A stretch of DNA of 64,000 nucleotides from Blastocystis sp. Blastoise (GCA_039096225.1 JBBPEB010000015.1:1240001-1304000), one strand, 5' to 3'; shown: positions 1 to 52,504, numbered from the stretch's first letter. The notes: a model not told the origin generated them from the letters alone. A program made the numbers and translations.

Positions 1-2769
1 TTAAATATAAAAATTGTTATTATAAATGATAATATATAAATATATATATAAATATAATTATAAATATAAATATATAAATGTGAATAAATATAAATATATA
101 TATAAATATATATAGATATATAAGAATAAATATAATTATAATTAAAAATATAAATATAAATATAAATATATAAATATAAATAAAAATAATATATATAATA
201 TGTATAATAAATAATTTTAAATGACTTACCTATTATATGAAATGAGATTGTTGTGTTATACATTAGATTATCTATGATTCCAAGGGCATAGATAACAAAA
301 TCAAATATACCAACATTTGGATATTGACCCGATATAATACCAGTAGATGAATCTAATGTCATTCCTATAGGAAAAGAAGGAATACTTGTGAAATTTGTGA
401 ATCCACTTGTAGATGGAATAATATTAAATTGATCTATTGAACCGTAACCAGAATATGTAGTATTCTCATAAGATAAATAAAATTGTGTAAGAGGAACATT
501 ACATATATAGATATCAAATAAAGAAAAGGCTACTTTATTAGATTTACCACCATCAGCTATATATATTTTTATAATAGAGAAAAAAAGATTATAGATAATG
601 AATAAATAATTGTACCAAAGATAATACATAATAGCAGATATAATAATAGATAACAATAATATATATGAATGAATAATAATAATAAAGTTAAGTAAAATGA
701 TATAATTGTGTGATAAAAAAATCATTTATATACTTATTGACAATCTAAAACTATTATACACTTTACGATTTGCACGTGTATAAAACATTTCTTTCTGTTT
801 ACGAAGTGAGAATATAAATGAAGGTTTCATATCTATATATTCCCACGGTAATGTTTCATCATTTCTCCCTTCTATTATCCATGCATTTGGATCTCCATTC
901 GATGAAGTACTAGAACTAGCTAACAAATATGCATTCATATAAATAGCACTATAGAAGGTATTTGTAGAATATATAGATAGAATATATATATAATGCATTT
1001 GTAGAATATATATATAATATAAATTATAAAATATAAATAATAAAAAACTTAAATGTATAATGAAAAAAATATTTTGTTTTTTTATGAATATACCTATGAT
1101 TTGGAAGAGTATATATAATTTTCGGTGTATTTGAAGAAGGAGATAAATAATAAGATTCAACATTTAAATCAAATAGATGAGACCCATCATTACTACTTGA
1201 ACTATTTTCGGGATCTGCTTCATATGTACCTCCAGAAAGTAATTGGGTCGAACATTCTATATATATATATGTAGTATTCTTTATATGTAGAATATTCAAT
1301 AGAATAGAATATAAAAGTACATGTATATAAAACTATTATAAAAATATATTTTATAAATATTAATAATAATATATATATACGTCCTTCAGGTAGATCGATT
1401 TGTAATCCAACAACAGAAAAGGGATCTGAAAGATGTAATGTTTCATTATAATGATGTATCTCTATACATAATATTGTTTCACCATTCTCATTTAATAAAA
1501 ACTTTGGAATTGTTAATCTAAAGAATATTTTTTAGATATTAATATAAGATTACAGAAATAGGTAAAAATATTATTATAAGAATACTAAAATTTTTCAATT
1601 ATATATATATATAATAGATGTATATTGACAATTAATAATATATATAATAATGGATATATGAATAAATAATGATTTATACTCTAATAATGGTGCTGCTTCA
1701 TCATTTTCAAATAAGGCATGTGTTTCACCAGTTAGTTGTCCTCTATTATTAGTAAATATATGAATAGTATAGAATAGAATTGAATCAAAACAATAAAAAT
1801 ATGTACTATATTATACATATAAATATGATAAATATATACTGTGGTAATTTATATCTATAAAGTTCTTCTCCTTCTATATAAACAGCAATACCAGATCCAG
1901 TTCTTATAGAGAGCTTCACACCAGCAATAGTTTGTATAGATGTAAATATATGATGAAGTCGATAATAACGAGTAATAGAAGAAAAAGAAGGAAATGTATT
2001 ATTTGTTCCTTGATTCCATATAGAATCATCATAATCTCTTTGAGTCCAAAATGAAGATACTTGAGATATATCTGAATATCTCCAAAAAATATCTTCACTA
2101 ATTACGGGAGGAACTATAAAGATTATTCTTATTTATCGTTATTATTTAATTTATTTTTATTATTATTATTATTTAATTTATTATTTAATTTACTATTATT
2201 ATATTTTTATATAAATTATATATATATTATAAAATGAAATAGAAAATAATAATAAGATACATATTTTATATACATGTAAATGTTATTGTTTTTTCTTTGA
2301 ATGTAGTCCCTAGATGATATGGAATAAAATCTTTAATAATTTCTCTGTTGTTATAAATAATAGTAAAATATGATTGTTCATCTTTCTTACCCCAACCATC
2401 TCCGAATCTAAGAGTAAAGAAAAATTAAAGTAGCAAAATAGAGATATTTTGTATAGATGACAAATTACCTATCTTTCAATTGAATCGTATACAATCCTGG
2501 AGTCACACATAAATCATATGTTTTCGCTTGATTCGAATATATAGATAAGCCTGTTTGAGTAAACAATTTGCTAGTAGATAAATCAGATCCTTTCCAAATA
2601 TTCAAAGTCTGTTCTTCTGCATACTTTGTATACCATATATAAATTTGAAGAGTACTTTCGTCTTCATTACAAGAATAAACTATATTTATTATATATAAAA
2701 CAAAGTCAGTTAATTACCTAAACTCAATCCGAAGAGGCATAAAAGGCATAAACATCGCATATCCATCAT
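1..2769 (-). CDS. Large secreted/surface protein with galactose-binding-like, F5/8 type C (discoidin)-like and putative Ig (He_PIG) domains; multi-exon, 3' end outside window
   Basis: Exon 1 (ATG 2769) gives signal peptide MMDMRCLCLLCLFGLSL. Later exons: LCVTPGLYDSI..GDGWG; WRYSDISQVSSFWTQRDYDDSIW...TRYYR...GIAVYIEGEELYRYKLP (about 1840-2115); YLLASS...DPNAWIIEGRND..WEYID...YNSFRLSI (about 735-970, discoidin-like); FPIGMTLDSSTGIISG (230-556, He_PIG-like). GT-AG introns. Confidence 0.7.
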
Positions 2770-4443
2770 TTTCTATTATTATAAACGAAATAAAAAAAAA
2801 TTGTCTATAAGAATAGTAAGAAGAATAATGAAAAATTCTATTCTTTTTTCTATAATTAAAAAAAAAAGAAATAGAGAAGATGAATACTCGTCGGAATGGT
2901 TTTGTTTACTTGAGAGAATAGCAAGTCTTACGCAATTCATGACACTTCCAAAACAAACCAAATGAATGGTTGCCCTATAATTGTGATCTTTTTAAAGGGC
3001 ATATTCCTCTATAAGTCCGTATTTTTAGAAATTAAGTCTTTTAAAAGAAATATGATTGGCATTTCTATTTTGTTTACAATAGATGCGTCATCATTAGGGT
3101 TTCAAAATAGAGAAAAAAAAAATTCTTTTGTTTGAATAATATTTATTATTATTATATATTCTTTTAATATTTTGTTTTAAAACATAATTTTTAATTGATC
3201 AAAGGATAATCAGATGTATAATAAATATATATTTGTTCCTAAATCCATATTCAAGAAGTTGTGTTTCTTTCCTAAAATGCGTCATTCTTCCACGAAAAAA
3301 TAATAATGGAGAAAAAATTCGATGGTTGTCTCTTTTTGTTTCATTCTAAACCATTCAAATATTGAAATTACTGATATTTAGAATGAATCTATAGAGTATA
3401 TCGATTTGTCTTATGCTAATATAAAAGGAAGATTAGAATAAAACAAAGTAGGTTTTTTGTTGTAATCTGTTCTAGAATCGTTCTCGTTTGTTGTTATAGT
3501 TCATGTATATCCTCAAGTGATTACAAACATAAGTTTATTGATATTGAATAATATTAAAGAAATTATACATTTTGAAATGCAAATAGTTATTAGTTTTAGG
3601 AAAGTTCAGATGAATAAAATGTTGTAGATAAGTAGTAATTTGTAACAGTGAATATAAAATGTTTTTTGTAACTAATTATGTGTGTGTTACTTGCAAAAAA
3701 ATTTTAAAAAAAAATTATAAAATCCTTTAACTCAAGAAAAAAAATTATCTTGGTATTTAACCACACATAACTCTTAAAACAAATTTATATAACGTATGAT
3801 CTTACCAAAAATAATATTTATATTGCATAAGATACATTAATACGTATTAATAATTAAGAAATAATTAGGATCAACATTTCATTTCTAATTAAATCGATGA
3901 ATATTATTATATTTAATTTAGTAATATAATGATAATTCAATTTCTGTTGAATAAATCATCAGTTTTACCACTTTTAGTGATTTCATAGAATAGAATGTGT
4001 AAATATTTTTGGAATCTATTTGATTAAAGATCTTTCTGACATTCTTTCTATATCAAATACACAAAATATATTTAATATATCTTTAATTTCAAAAATGTTA
4101 TTTCAGAATTCAATTAATATTAATACTAATTTTGGTGAAATTAATATTTTCATAACTATGTCAACTAATTAAACTGATAAATTCATAATAAAATAATGAT
4201 TTAAAACAAATCTAAAAGGATGAATGAATTCTCAATCTAAATAATTTCAGTGAATTTCAGTCAACTGTTTTTAAATGCGATAATATTGATTATCTATGAT
4301 TTCTAGCTAAAAAATATAATAAATTCATGGTTATTCTTTTTAACTTGTTTATGGTTTGTTTTTTATTAATTAGGGTAAAAACATACAAATTCTTTATTGA
4401 AGTATACTATAATTTCTTTTTGAATATACTGAGAGAGAGAATC

Positions 4444-51900: not shown

Positions 51901-52504
51901 ACTACTATATATTCCCTAAAAATTATATATATATATATATATATATATATATATATACTTAATTGAGATAATAATACTATCAATGAACTTTGTGTCTGTA
52001 ATTAAAGTATCGTTGACTTCTTTTGAAAGAGAATATAAAAATTTTGTTAAAATGCATATTCTTTGTTCATAAATATATGAAAATATCTAAATAATAATAA
52101 TTAAGATATTTCAACATGAATGAATTATAAATAGGTAGATTTATTCAAATACGTAAATATAAATAAAAATGACTTACAGAAACAAAATTTTCCTTAGTGA
52201 TTGCAGAATGATTCTTATCTAGAATTTCATATTTCGTATCAATCAAGTTCACGGGGACATTCAATATAAAGCTATAGTCATCTAATAAACTATTATTTCG
52301 ACGAATTAATAGGACCTATATTATTAAATATTTCGTCATAATTAATATATATATACTTCTTTTACAGAGTCTTGTAAGAAATAATAATTCTTGAAATCAT
52401 TAATACATTGTTTTGTTTCCTAATTGAATGAGAGTTTATTTTATTTCATATACAGATTGAGATATATCATCAAATGAGTAACGACTATAGTCTTCTTTTA
52501 TCAT
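42993..52504 (-). CDS. Large alpha-solenoid protein, probably nucleoporin Nup188 (Nup188/Nup205 family); many exons
   Basis: Start [28 protein letters not shown] resembles Nup188 DYYYEERTCILRC, and [12 protein letters not shown] resembles the Nup188 IPQGT insert. Size fits. Ends MITILRVN*. Confidence 0.55.
43975..44064. repeat. (AAAT)n intronic microsatellite
   Basis: Perfect tetranucleotide run. Confidence 0.95.
46027..46273. repeat. (AAT)n intronic microsatellite
   Basis: Near-perfect run of about 245 bp. Confidence 0.95.

Follow-up and report, generated by a model that had tools for sequence, protein, structure and literature searches.

The stretch analysed here raises the question of why a very AT-rich genome should carry GC-rich, palindromic words inside its exons, and what might keep them there. 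The window (the whole stretch of DNA analysed, 64,000 nt; GCA_039096225.1, JBBPEB010000015.1:1240001-1304000) belongs to Blastocystis sp. 'Blastoise'. Blastocystis is a stramenopile, and the host in this case is a tortoise gut protist with very AT-rich DNA; within the window, GC content was 28.6 % in exon cores and 17.1 % in the remainder. Sites were additionally collected from 47 kb at two loci (L002 and L003) on two other contigs of the Blastoise genome, giving 111 kb in total. A preliminary description of the window had listed several such words, and all of its coordinates were correct when rechecked. CCGCGG occurs seven times (13630, 18995, 21400, 35163, 40985, 49108 and 50647), CACGGG at 5107, 5149, 15903, 49638 and 52250, CCCGTG at 41010 and 44451, CGCGGGAA at 48170 and 50203 and also at 18996, and TACGGG/CCCGTA at 2103, 15606, 25547, 19036 and 35510 and also at 38395. 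The longer forms TTCCCGCGGGAA, TTCCCGTGGGAA and TTCCCGCGGGGAA lie at 18992, 44449 and 21397, respectively. Four further sites (44271, 12973, 839 and 8230) had been missed on the first reading.

The seven copies of CCGCGG compare with 0.06-0.11 expected in the window under Markov models of order 0-2 and 0.74 under order 3. A synonymous-codon shuffle that preserved amino acids and codon usage, of the kind proposed in the preliminary description, was run in global and within-exon versions. It returned 0.12 expected copies of CCGCGG against seven observed, 0.18 of CGCGGG against nine and 0.74 of CACGGG against five, with weak enrichment for the TACG-centred class (TACGGG, five versus 1.28); when codons were shuffled only within exons, the CGCG words were still in excess (P<0.001). 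An unbiased scan of exon hexamers against the codon-shuffle null placed CCCGCG and CCGCGG first and second among 1855 words. No other all-G/C hexamer was enriched, and CGCGG lay inside 9 of the 13 G/C-only runs of at least 6 nt in the window. The excess was repeated at L002 and L003, which together held four copies of CCGCGG (~0.2 expected), 14 of CGCGG (~2 expected) and 16 of CRCGGKWA (~1.1 expected). GC3 around the sites was not raised and junction CpG was slightly depleted overall, indicative of a sharp local signal and not of regionally high GC or of a preference for CpG in general. The enrichment originally claimed therefore withstands Markov, codon-shuffle and within-exon nulls and recurs on two other contigs, and a frequency so far above chance suggests that some DNA-level reader or repair bias maintains the motif.

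The preliminary description had listed these words separately. All of them are present; as judged from the sequence, however, CCGCGG, CACGGG and CGCGGGAA are instances of one 14-bp two-fold symmetric motif, 5'-ATWMY-C[G/A]CG-RKWAT-3', the words being variants of a single palindrome centred on CGCG or CACG/CGTG. The sites and weaker relatives in the window are as follows.

13626..13639, exon, + strand, 1794-aa gene: full site ATAACCGCGGTAAT, AAC CGC GGT (N-R-G)
18991..19004, exon, CCDC84-like gene: full site ATTCCCGCGGGAAA, including the perfect palindrome TTCCCGCGGGAA, TCC CGC GGG (S-R-G)
21396..21409, exon 4 of fucosyltransferase-like gene P0001, minus strand: full site ATTCCCGCGGGGAA, CCC CGC GGG (P-R-G)
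35159..35172, exon, minus strand: full site AATTCCGCGGTTAT, ACC GCG GAA (T-A-E)
40984..40990, exon, minus strand, thioredoxin/UBA-like gene: CCCGCGG core (TAATCCCGCGGAATTA), TCC GCG GGA (S-A-G)
48165..48178, exon, minus strand: full site TTAATCGCGGGAAA, CCG CGA (P-R); its first 13 bases (TTAATCGCGGGAA) recur at L002 15048
49104..49117, exon, minus strand: full site ATAACCGCGGGGAA, CCC GCG GTT ATT (P-A-V-I)
50198..50211, exon, minus strand: one-sided site GCGCGGGAAG (S-R-A), with a GCGGGAAA half-site 18 bp upstream (50184/50185)
50643..50656, exon, minus strand: full site ATAACCGCGGGGGA, CCC GCG GTT ATC (P-A-V-I)
44448..44461, exon, minus strand: full site with CGTG centre ATTCCCGTGGGAAT (S-H-G-N)
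44271..44284: full site with CGTG centre ATTACCGTGGTTAT
12973..12986: full site with CACG centre ATTCCCACGATTAT; identical 14-mer at L002 19537
15898..15911, 6 nt inside an exon: full site with CACG centre ATAATCACGGGAAT; identical 14-mer at L002 8848
5144..5157, WD40-repeat exon: CACG-centre site ATTATCACGGGAAC (I-T-G); identical 14-mer at L003 2819
5107..5112, the same WD40 exon as the 5144 site: CACGGG (TTCACGGGAGG), weaker one-sided relative (F-T-G)
839..852: full site with CACG centre ATTCCCACGGTAAT
8230..8243: full site with CACG centre AATTCCACGATTAC
7026..7039: one-sided site ATAATCGTGTTATT
63466..63479, outside predicted exon cores: one-sided site TTAACCGTGAGAAA
41009..41015, 25 bp from the 40984 site: CCCCGTG (ATAATCACGGGGATAAT, coding strand), N-H-G-D
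49638..49643, antisense to the coding strand: CACGGG (ATTCACGGGACTT), weaker relative (S-P-V)
52250..52255, antisense to the likely coding strand: CACGGG (GTTCACGGGGACA), weaker relative
19035..19041, 38 bp from the 18991 site: CCCCGTA (AATTACGGGG, other strand), TACG-centred relative
35509..35515: CCCCGTA (TATTACGGGGAAA, other strand), TACG-centred relative
2103..2108: TACGGG (TAATTACGGGAGG), TACG-centred relative
15606..15611: TACGGG (ATTTACGGGGATT), TACG-centred relative

Across the 111 kb we counted 36 sites, or about one per 3 kb, with CGCG at the centre of 17 and CACG/CGTG at the centre of 19. The half-site took the form [C/T]-G-R-K-W-A-T (typically CGGGAAT, CGGTTAT or CGATTA[T/A]), the GCGGGAA type being the commonest class. 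The G of its CG was invariant (72/72), whilst the first C was sometimes T. Flank information was equal on both sides out to +5 and absent from +6, with A at +4 in 74 % (background 36 %) and T at +5 in 63 % (background 35 %). Both halves matched in 21 of the 36 sites, and 35 of 68 CGG[G]KWA half-sites were preceded by CG or CA. Neutral, strand-symmetric decay of one CpG should yield CACG/CGTG and TGCG/CGCA centres equally; the observed 14 and 3, respectively, point instead to position-specific tolerance. The G run before AAT varied (CGG, CGGG, CGGGG or CGGGGG), and G/C runs of 6, 7, 8 and 9 nt all fell within intact reading frames. T preceded CGCG in five or six sites (TCGCGG at 48170 and at L002 7548, 7752, 15053 and 19135), and in CGTG-type sites the CGTG was followed by G or A, not T. 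Identical 14-mers recurred in unrelated genes on different contigs.

Approximately 33 of the 36 sites (~90 %) were exonic, and composition alone predicts ~85 %. The assertion that the words occur only in exons did not survive this comparison, as one site (L003 19351-19364) lies at -140 from an ATG, the only 1 of 36 clearly upstream of a gene, and another, in the Blastoise loci outside the window, is probably intronic. That none had been seen in intergenic DNA is uninformative, since the non-coding part of the window, at 17 % GC, would be expected to contain only ~0.01 copies of CCGCGG. Sites thus occur wherever the sequence can carry the motif, which given such non-coding DNA means mostly exons. 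The description was right that disfavoured codons are used (CGC makes up 2 % of Arg, GCG 5 % of Ala and GGG 8 % of Gly codons) and that frames and orientations differ between sites: all three reading frames and both strands were represented, and no frame or strand was preferred. Judged by site positions against the annotation, there was no positional preference inside annotated genes. The host genes are functionally unrelated, including a glycosidase, the fucosyltransferase-like and CCDC84-like genes and giant low-complexity proteins, and in them the motif dictates short peptides such as P-A-V-I and x-R-G. In a GH20 paralogue pair at L002, two sites aligned gap-free to the copy without them (TAG versus TSL and PAG versus KEG), identifying them as substitutions at variable residues, not insertions or other indels. 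The motif overrides codon preference in exons and, at tolerant positions, the amino-acid sequence. Human duons, transcription-factor sites that lie in coding exons and limit which codons can be used, reflect many factors whose joint effect is diffuse and statistical. Here too a regulatory DNA code would be superimposed on the genetic one, codons being chosen so that a binding motif is preserved; in contrast to duons, the word statistics of the exons are dominated by one motif, which also alters amino acids.

Our leading explanation, to which we give a probability of roughly 40 %, is that the motif is the recognition site of a putative sequence-specific protein that would bind duplex DNA as a dimer. 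Such a dimer would read two everted CGG triplets and their AT-rich shoulders; within the CG of each half-site the G would be held and the first C may be T, and selection on binding could keep copies against strong AT mutation pressure. Binding of this kind might serve transcription, chromatin or the maintenance of chromosomes. We counted in its favour that all nulls were exceeded, that the other contigs replicated the result, the symmetry and the identical 14-mers in unrelated genes, the half-sites preceded by CG or CA, the position-specific tolerance, the use of all frames and both strands, the sharply local signal, the gap-free substitutions in the GH20 paralogues and a parallel in yeast. 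The original proposal of a DNA-level signal over the protein code, such as a dimeric binding site, is supported by the two-fold symmetry, the flank information out to +5, the indifference to frame and strand, the rarest codons and the forced peptides; exon specificity and the division into separate words are dropped. The recognition logic would resemble that of the yeast pleiotropic drug response element (PDRE), a zero-gap everted 5'-CCGCGG-3' bound by the zinc-cluster factors Pdr1/Pdr3 and also by Pdr8, Rdr1 and Yrr1. PDREs exist as the canonical type A TCCGCGGA and a common one-base variant, type B TCCGTGGA, with half-site binding and a preference for AA flanks. Our CGCG and CGTG/CACG centres correspond to these two types, half-sites are used and flanks are A/T (AA), and TTCCGCGG is present literally at 35160; the tolerance of CCGTGG beside CCGCGG is seen in the 17 CGCG and 19 CACG/CGTG sites. 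However, PDREs are 8 bp long, number tens per genome and lie in promoters, whereas this motif spans 14 bp, has variable C/G runs, recurs about once per 3 kb and is mostly found in coding exons (~33/36) rather than promoters. The CGCG and CGTG boxes of CAMTA (CG-1 domain) transcription factors, (A/C/G)CGCG(C/G/T) and (A/C)CGTGT, offer a second comparison, sharing the core CG(C/T)G, a rule that CCGCGG and CCGTGG obey. They differ in being short, promoter-located and not 14-bp palindromes, and our sites depart from their consensus in that TCGCGG breaks the 5' rule and CGTG is followed by G/A rather than T.

Several observations weigh against a dimer site. Extrapolation gives ~10,000 copies per 33-Mb genome, a heavy load if each were individually selected. 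Variable G-run length is unusual for a binding site of fixed geometry. As for a zinc-cluster binder, the family is reported to be unique to fungi, and the host is a stramenopile. Placement, moreover, follows base composition and not promoters, a pattern that suits a location-independent process at least as well as it suits classical transcription-factor sites.

A serious rival to the dimer-site reading, albeit a less probable one, is a molecular drive in which motif-directed repair, methylation or protection takes the place of site-by-site selection. C-to-T change at the outer cytosines would be corrected or prevented by a repair activity or a pair of enzymes recognizing a CGCG-centred site, for example a cytosine methyltransferase gained by horizontal transfer and acting with a mismatch endonuclease of the very-short-patch type; a tightly bound protein that shielded the site would do likewise. 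In a genome drifting hard towards AT, sites would then be retained or build up wherever the sequence is already near-cognate, much like the uptake sequences (USS/DUS) of competent bacteria. Uptake sequences are found in coding regions, where they make the peptides that they specify more frequent and favour poorly conserved residues, and their accepted explanation is a location-independent drive. The likeness to our motif is considerable: both are short motifs recurring about once per 1-3 kb inside genes in all frames and both orientations, both enrich the peptides that they encode and lie preferentially at poorly conserved residues, and over-representation irrespective of frame, strand and gene function was found on all three contigs sampled (111 kb). 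Unlike the present palindromic motif, which is written in the rarest codons and resides in a eukaryote, uptake sequences lack symmetry, employ preferred codons and require natural transformation. Also consistent with drive are a distribution that tracks mutational availability, with no positional preference inside annotated genes, the very high density, the imposition of peptides at poorly conserved residues, and the genome paper's account of genes taken up by Blastocystis from gut bacteria. The outer cytosines are seldom mutated (TGCG, 3) and the inner often (CACG, 14), as would fit repair aimed at one cytosine. On the other hand, the sequences recognized by restriction-modification and short-patch systems are normally 4-8 bp long, whereas information here extends over 14 bp with AT-rich shoulders. 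Short-patch repair is known to shift word frequencies only modestly, by less than 2-fold, compared with a motif excess of 15-60-fold. 5-Methylcytosine would raise rather than lower the rate of loss unless repair were very efficient, and the genome paper makes no mention of methylation.

An identity as E2F/DP sites (consensus TTTSSCGC), suggested in the preliminary description, is improbable. The core recognized by E2F-DP is symmetric and CG-rich (CGCG/GCGC) and has a T-rich shoulder. The window contains three copies of GCGGGAAA (18998, 48172 and 50185), which is the canonical E2F sequence TTTCCCGC read on the opposite strand, and GCGGGAA-type half-sites are the commonest class; the resemblance noted at the outset is sound only for the GGGAA-type half-site. 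Those three were nonetheless the only exact TTTSSCGC matches. Equally common half-sites (CGGTTAT, CGGTAAT or CGATTA[T/A], about half of the total) are incompatible with that consensus, and the 19 of 36 CACG/CGTG centres lose a G that E2F requires. Nor was there promoter bias of the kind expected of promoter-proximal sites in cell-cycle genes; sites lay mid-gene in functionally unrelated genes.

An RNA-level element in mature mRNA, whether a protein-binding, modification or structure signal, would explain the exonic location of most copies, but we consider it more improbable still. Composition already accounts for the exon excess, and two-fold symmetry with equal flank information is a property of duplex DNA. 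In a hand tally against annotated gene strands, CACG lay on the coding strand 12 times and CGTG six times, a mild, non-significant sense excess; without strong sense/antisense bias, and with all frames and both strands in use, reading at the RNA level is unlikely. Asymmetric variants were seen both sense and antisense to transcription, and the copy upstream of a start codon and the probably intronic one also argue against it.

We give slightly less credence again to footprints of mobile elements or miniature insertions, that is, excision scars or fused terminal repeats with TA/TAA/TTAA target duplications. TAA, TAAT or TTAA flanks are frequent and sometimes form short direct repeats (TAA-CCGCGG-TAA at 13630; AATAA-CCGCGGGG-AATAA at 49108), and G/C-run length is variable. 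Yet similarity ends at +/-7 bp with no longer element attached, runs of every length keep their reading frames, and non-coding DNA, in which scars ought to be most frequent, showed almost none. Together with the gap-free GH20 alignments, which show substitution rather than insertion, these observations largely refute this candidate.

Finally, chance, compositional heterogeneity, codon-context bias or post-hoc word choice has a negligible probability: exon cores are indeed GC-richer and the word was picked after the window had been seen, but the nulls exceeded preserve amino acids and codon usage, and even the codon content of each exon, CCCGCG/CCGCGG head an unbiased scan, the remaining all-G/C hexamers lie at expectation, junction CpG is if anything depleted, and the same words, specified beforehand, were again in excess in 47 kb on two other contigs.

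Seven copies of CCGCGG are present in the window, all within predicted exon cores, where Markov models of order 0–2 expect 0.06–0.11 and a model of order 3 expects 0.74. The preliminary description had put the expectation at well under 1, and its coordinates were all correct when rechecked against the window sequence. Exon cores were predicted with a self-trained codon log-odds segmenter, yielding 129 cores spanning 27.2 kb (GC 28.6 %, GC3 14.9 %; remainder of the window, GC 17.1 %). The codon-shuffled null proposed in that description, which preserves amino acids and codon usage, was run on these cores and gave an expectation of 0.12 for CCGCGG (observed 7), 0.18 for CGCGGG/CCCGCG (9), 0.74 for CACGGG (5) and 1.28 for TACGGG (5). 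For the CGCG words P<0.001 was retained even with the shuffle confined within each exon. A scan of all hexamers against the synonymous shuffle placed CCCGCG first and CCGCGG second of 1855; other hexamers of the same GC content were not equally frequent, the remaining all-G/C hexamers being unenriched, and the excess was absent from control words with permuted G/C. The window has 13 stretches of 6 nt or longer made up of G and C alone, nine of which contain CGCGG, and the degenerate 8-mer CRCGGKWA occurred 26 times in exon cores (1.7 expected).

The codons that write these words had been described as disfavoured and are in fact the rarest (CGC 2 % of Arg, GCG 5 % of Ala, GGG 8 % of Gly). CCGCGG was realized at 7 of the 52 peptide positions able to encode it, including 3 of 10 x-R-G positions. 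Flank GC3 of 10–17 %, compared with 14.9 % overall, ruled out a GC-rich patch around the sites as well as biased gene conversion, and a slight depletion of junction CpG (z = -2.7) ruled out a general CpG or codon-junction preference; together, these two results indicate a sharp local signal. Codon junctions in the window exon cores otherwise displayed an excess of G|A (z = 12) and depletion of G|C and G|G (z about -6 to -7) relative to the synonymous shuffle, a general codon-context bias unrelated to the motif. A second exon word, TCTCAGATAATAA (window 9860-10060, L002 9100-9170 and L002 20347), looked enriched in the shuffle scan and was rejected as a coding repeat, N-N-I-S-D-N-N (AAT AAT ATC TCA GAT AAT AAT), which recurs in low-complexity proteins encoded by different genes on separate contigs.

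Queries for the homology searches were either individual stop-free exon references or protein ids from the database. A profile-free search with a GH20 exon recovered two paralogues from the assembly, on contigs other than that of the window:

L002: contig 11, 22.3 kb, GH20 paralogue locus
L003: contig 21, 24.9 kb, GH20 paralogue locus

These 47 kb played no part in the preliminary description, and the words tested were those of that description, fixed beforehand. CCGCGG was found four times against ~0.2 expected (Poisson P ~1e-4), CGCGG 14 times against ~2 and CACGGG eight times against ~1.5. Exon-core prediction was imperfect throughout, examples being real exons missed at L002 15053 and 19241 and a wrong strand at L003 1791 relative to the annotation. 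The other hits P0005, P0018, P0028 and P0132 of the GH20 representative search belong to other organisms and lie on short contigs that lack the motif. For orthologues in other tortoise isolates, a word-based search with the exon of a CCDC84-like gene gave no match and a search with P0001, a fucosyltransferase-like protein, returned P0001 alone; a metagenome scan for orthologues likewise gave no match.

We aligned the CGCG occurrences on their centre and compared their flanks with those of other exonic CpGs. Flank information was equal on both sides through +5 and nil from +6 outward, with A at +4 in 74 % and T at +5 in 63 %, against 36 % and 35 %, respectively, in that comparison set. The signal is accordingly described as one 14-bp palindrome, ATWMY-C[G/A]CG-RKWAT, with half-site [C/T]-G-R-K-W-A-T and chief forms CGGGAAT, CGGTTAT, CGGTAAT and CGATTA[T/A]. 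The CACGGG class had been set beside CCGCGG as a related word; the kinship stands, but it is no separate word, being the same palindrome with one central CpG as CpA/TpG.

Motif sequences: ATTCCCGCGGGAAT, ATAACCGCGGTTAT, ATTCCCACGATTAT
CACG-class examples: ATTCCCACGATTAT, ATAATCACGGGAAT, ATTCCCGTGGGAAT

A simple pattern returned 36 sites in the 111 kb of window, L002 and L003, 17 with a CGCG and 19 with a CACG/CGTG centre; both halves were recognizable in 21, and several 14-mers recurred identically across contigs, in unrelated genes. The observation is thus confirmed and sharpened to a single 14-bp palindrome that is real, replicated and absent from the genome paper on the tortoise isolates, which does not report a motif of this kind; we found nothing relevant to it in the literature on AT-rich genomes or Blastocystis. 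Density was ~1 site per 3 kb over the three contigs, which, extrapolated from these 111 kb to the 33 Mb genome size given in that paper, corresponds to the order of ten thousand copies.

Each of the three frames and both strands carried sites; differing frames and orientations had been noted at the outset. CCC GCG GTT AT[TC] encodes P-A-V-I at 49108 and 50647, CGC GGN encodes R-G at 13630, 18995 (CCDC84-like gene) and 21400 (P0001), and CCC GCG ATT AAT encodes P-A-I-N at L002 7700 and 15053. Pfam identified zero domains in motif-bearing exons, indicating that no common protein motif accounts for the encoded peptides. Within the GH20 paralogue pair, both L002 sites aligned gap-free to the window copy, at variable residues amid conserved ones (L-T-A-G-L versus L-T-S-L-L, and M-I-P-A-G-V versus M-I-K-E-G-V). 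The motif therefore arises by substitution at tolerant positions rather than by insertion, and an insertion or footprint (transposon scar) model was rejected on this alignment.

The preliminary description placed the signal only in exons. Sites are indeed mostly exonic, with 30 of 36 in predicted exon cores and ~33 of 36 exonic by inspection, but specificity for exons does not follow: a word with ~6 G/C positions should turn up, base for base, ~7x as often in exons (28.6 % GC) as in non-coding DNA (17 % GC), so composition alone is calculated to place ~85 % of sites in exons. The lack of non-coding CCGCGG in the window is uninformative, since ~0.01 copies are expected there. Gene tables for the three loci displayed no positional preference of sites within annotated genes. 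Sites of note by location were:

L003 19351-19364: AAACCCGCGGTTAT, the one clear non-coding copy, with the ATG of the gene at 17968-19214 (minus) 140 bp downstream
L002 19130-19143: motif site with a likely 3' splice site 15 nt downstream
Window 44271, 44448, 48165, 49104, 49638, 50198, 50643 and 52250: eight sites or relatives within 43800-52400

The surroundings of the non-coding copy are unusually GC-rich for intergenic DNA. The 43800-52400 region (minus) is a Ser/Thr/Asn-rich exon run, probably of one or two very large genes, and six L002 sites fall within the final 3.5 kb of a gene encoding 5356 aa; such clustering may reflect long tolerant coding sequence.

Two-fold symmetry, 14-bp extent and indifference to frame and strand point to a dimeric reader of duplex DNA, as opposed to an RNA element; by annotated strand, the coding strand carried CACG at 12 sites and CGTG at six, a difference that is not significant. 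We tentatively favour, at a probability of roughly 40 %, a putative dimeric protein-binding site maintained by selection, in which a dimeric protein would recognize duplex DNA at the 14-mer. CG or CA precedes 35 of 68 CGG[G]KWA half-sites, and in half-site contexts the inner transition (CACG/CGTG) was seen 14 times and the outer transition (TGCG) three times (binomial P ~0.01). As these are strand-equivalent decay products of one CpG, neutral decay would yield equal numbers, and the asymmetry suggests position-specific constraint at the motif centre.

Among described systems, the motif is nearest in logic to the zero-gap everted CGG repeat 5'-CCGCGG-3' of yeast Pdr1/Pdr3 (canonical TCCGCGGA, common variant TCCGTGGA), where half-sites are bound and an AA flank is preferred. 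The core CG(C/T)G read by the CG-1 domain of CAMTA factors likewise resembles the motif centre. Both are resemblances and not membership; zinc-cluster factors such as Pdr1/Pdr3 are described as fungus-specific, and the sites here are not promoter elements. The interpretation first proposed, of a DNA-level signal such as a dimeric binding site, is partly supported, without its exon specificity or its likeness to E2F, which fits the GCGGGAA(A) subset and not the remaining sites.

A location-independent drive is the main rival, a serious one although less probable than the binding site; it could act through a short-patch system linked to methylation, or through repair or protection directed at the motif. 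A density of ~1/3 kb and placement that tracks base composition are the output expected of such a process, the rarity of outer-cytosine variants would suit repair targeting the outer cytosine, and bacterial uptake sequences, which build up in every frame, alter how often particular peptides occur and favour poorly conserved residues, provide an analogy. However, repair and methylation systems usually read 4–8 bp without AT-rich shoulders, as against 14 bp, and the enzyme behind the drive is hypothetical here. Selection on binding and drive are not separable from sequence alone. The remaining weight falls on E2F specifically, RNA-level function, transposon scars and chance, the last three being largely excluded by the shuffle nulls, hexamer scan, paralogue alignment, control words and site symmetry.

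More speculatively, and with low probability, the motif could be for a eukaryote what uptake sequences and Chi are for bacteria, a genome-signature motif: location-independent, in roughly ten thousand copies and held against extreme AT pressure. A genome-maintenance reader or a motif-directed repair/methylation drive would then keep it, overriding codon usage and rewriting short peptides in thousands of proteins. Genome-wide confirmation of the palindrome would make it a clean eukaryotic case of a single DNA motif visibly competing with the genetic code, the signs being the rarest codons, identical 14-mers across unrelated genes, and peptides such as P-A-V-I or x-R-G fixed at tolerant positions. 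Each copy is conspicuous against the 22 %-GC background, and the motif offers a direct handle on a putative DNA reader in Blastocystis; this eukaryote is very common in the gut, yet hardly any work exists on how its genes are regulated. Sequenced genomes of the three divergent AT-rich tortoise isolates and of the GC-rich human subtypes provide natural material for telling selection from drive in the evolution of the motif; amino-acid identity among the three isolates, Rus-B, Rus-S and Hermann's, goes down to 56 %. CCGCGG is also the SacII restriction site, making the sites amenable to methylation-sensitive digestion.

The GH20 beta-hexosaminidase paralogues at window 25085-27227 (minus) and L002 10001-12332 share ~76 % identity in the catalytic exon and 41–55 % elsewhere, with introns placed partly differently; hexosaminidases are named in the genome paper as one of the families unique to or higher-copy in tortoise isolates. 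At L003 10001-14910, an annotated 638-aa product with CID and GH20 domains over 4.9 kb may be a fused gene model, and the site at L003 14976-14989 lies just beyond the annotated gene end in a coding-looking frame. GH20 homologues on 27.5 %-GC contigs of another organism (L005/L006; Logan ERR13935988, ERR13935993) lack the CGCG motif and comprise two adjacent gene calls, 2215-2904 and 2913-3638, 8 nt apart; possible causes are a gene model that is broken or wrongly split, or read-through of an in-frame stop (alternative genetic code).

The window has a GC content of 22.0 %, short exons and very AT-rich introns packed with (TA)n; Rfam and tRNA scans of it gave no matches. A stop-free exon reference at 21036-21770 (minus) matched at 99 % the 394-aa 'hypothetical protein WA158_001218 [Blastocystis sp. 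Blastoise]', whose gene lies in GCA_039096225.1 on contig JBBPEB010000015.1 (2.51 Mb). Window 10716-32631 is identical to the fetched locus L001, and the 792-aa ORF of the window is a single exon of a larger gene. According to the genome paper, the three tortoise isolates have 21–23 % GC, against 39–55 % in human subtypes, and longer introns and intergenic regions. Very long AAT/ATT runs, poly-Asn in one strand and frame and poly-Ile in another, lie in or beside genes at 5717-5971, 45984-46274, 55436-55573 and elsewhere, and introns abound in (TA)n and TTTATTTA-type microsatellites, in agreement with the low-complexity fraction of 12 % published for tortoise-isolate genomes.
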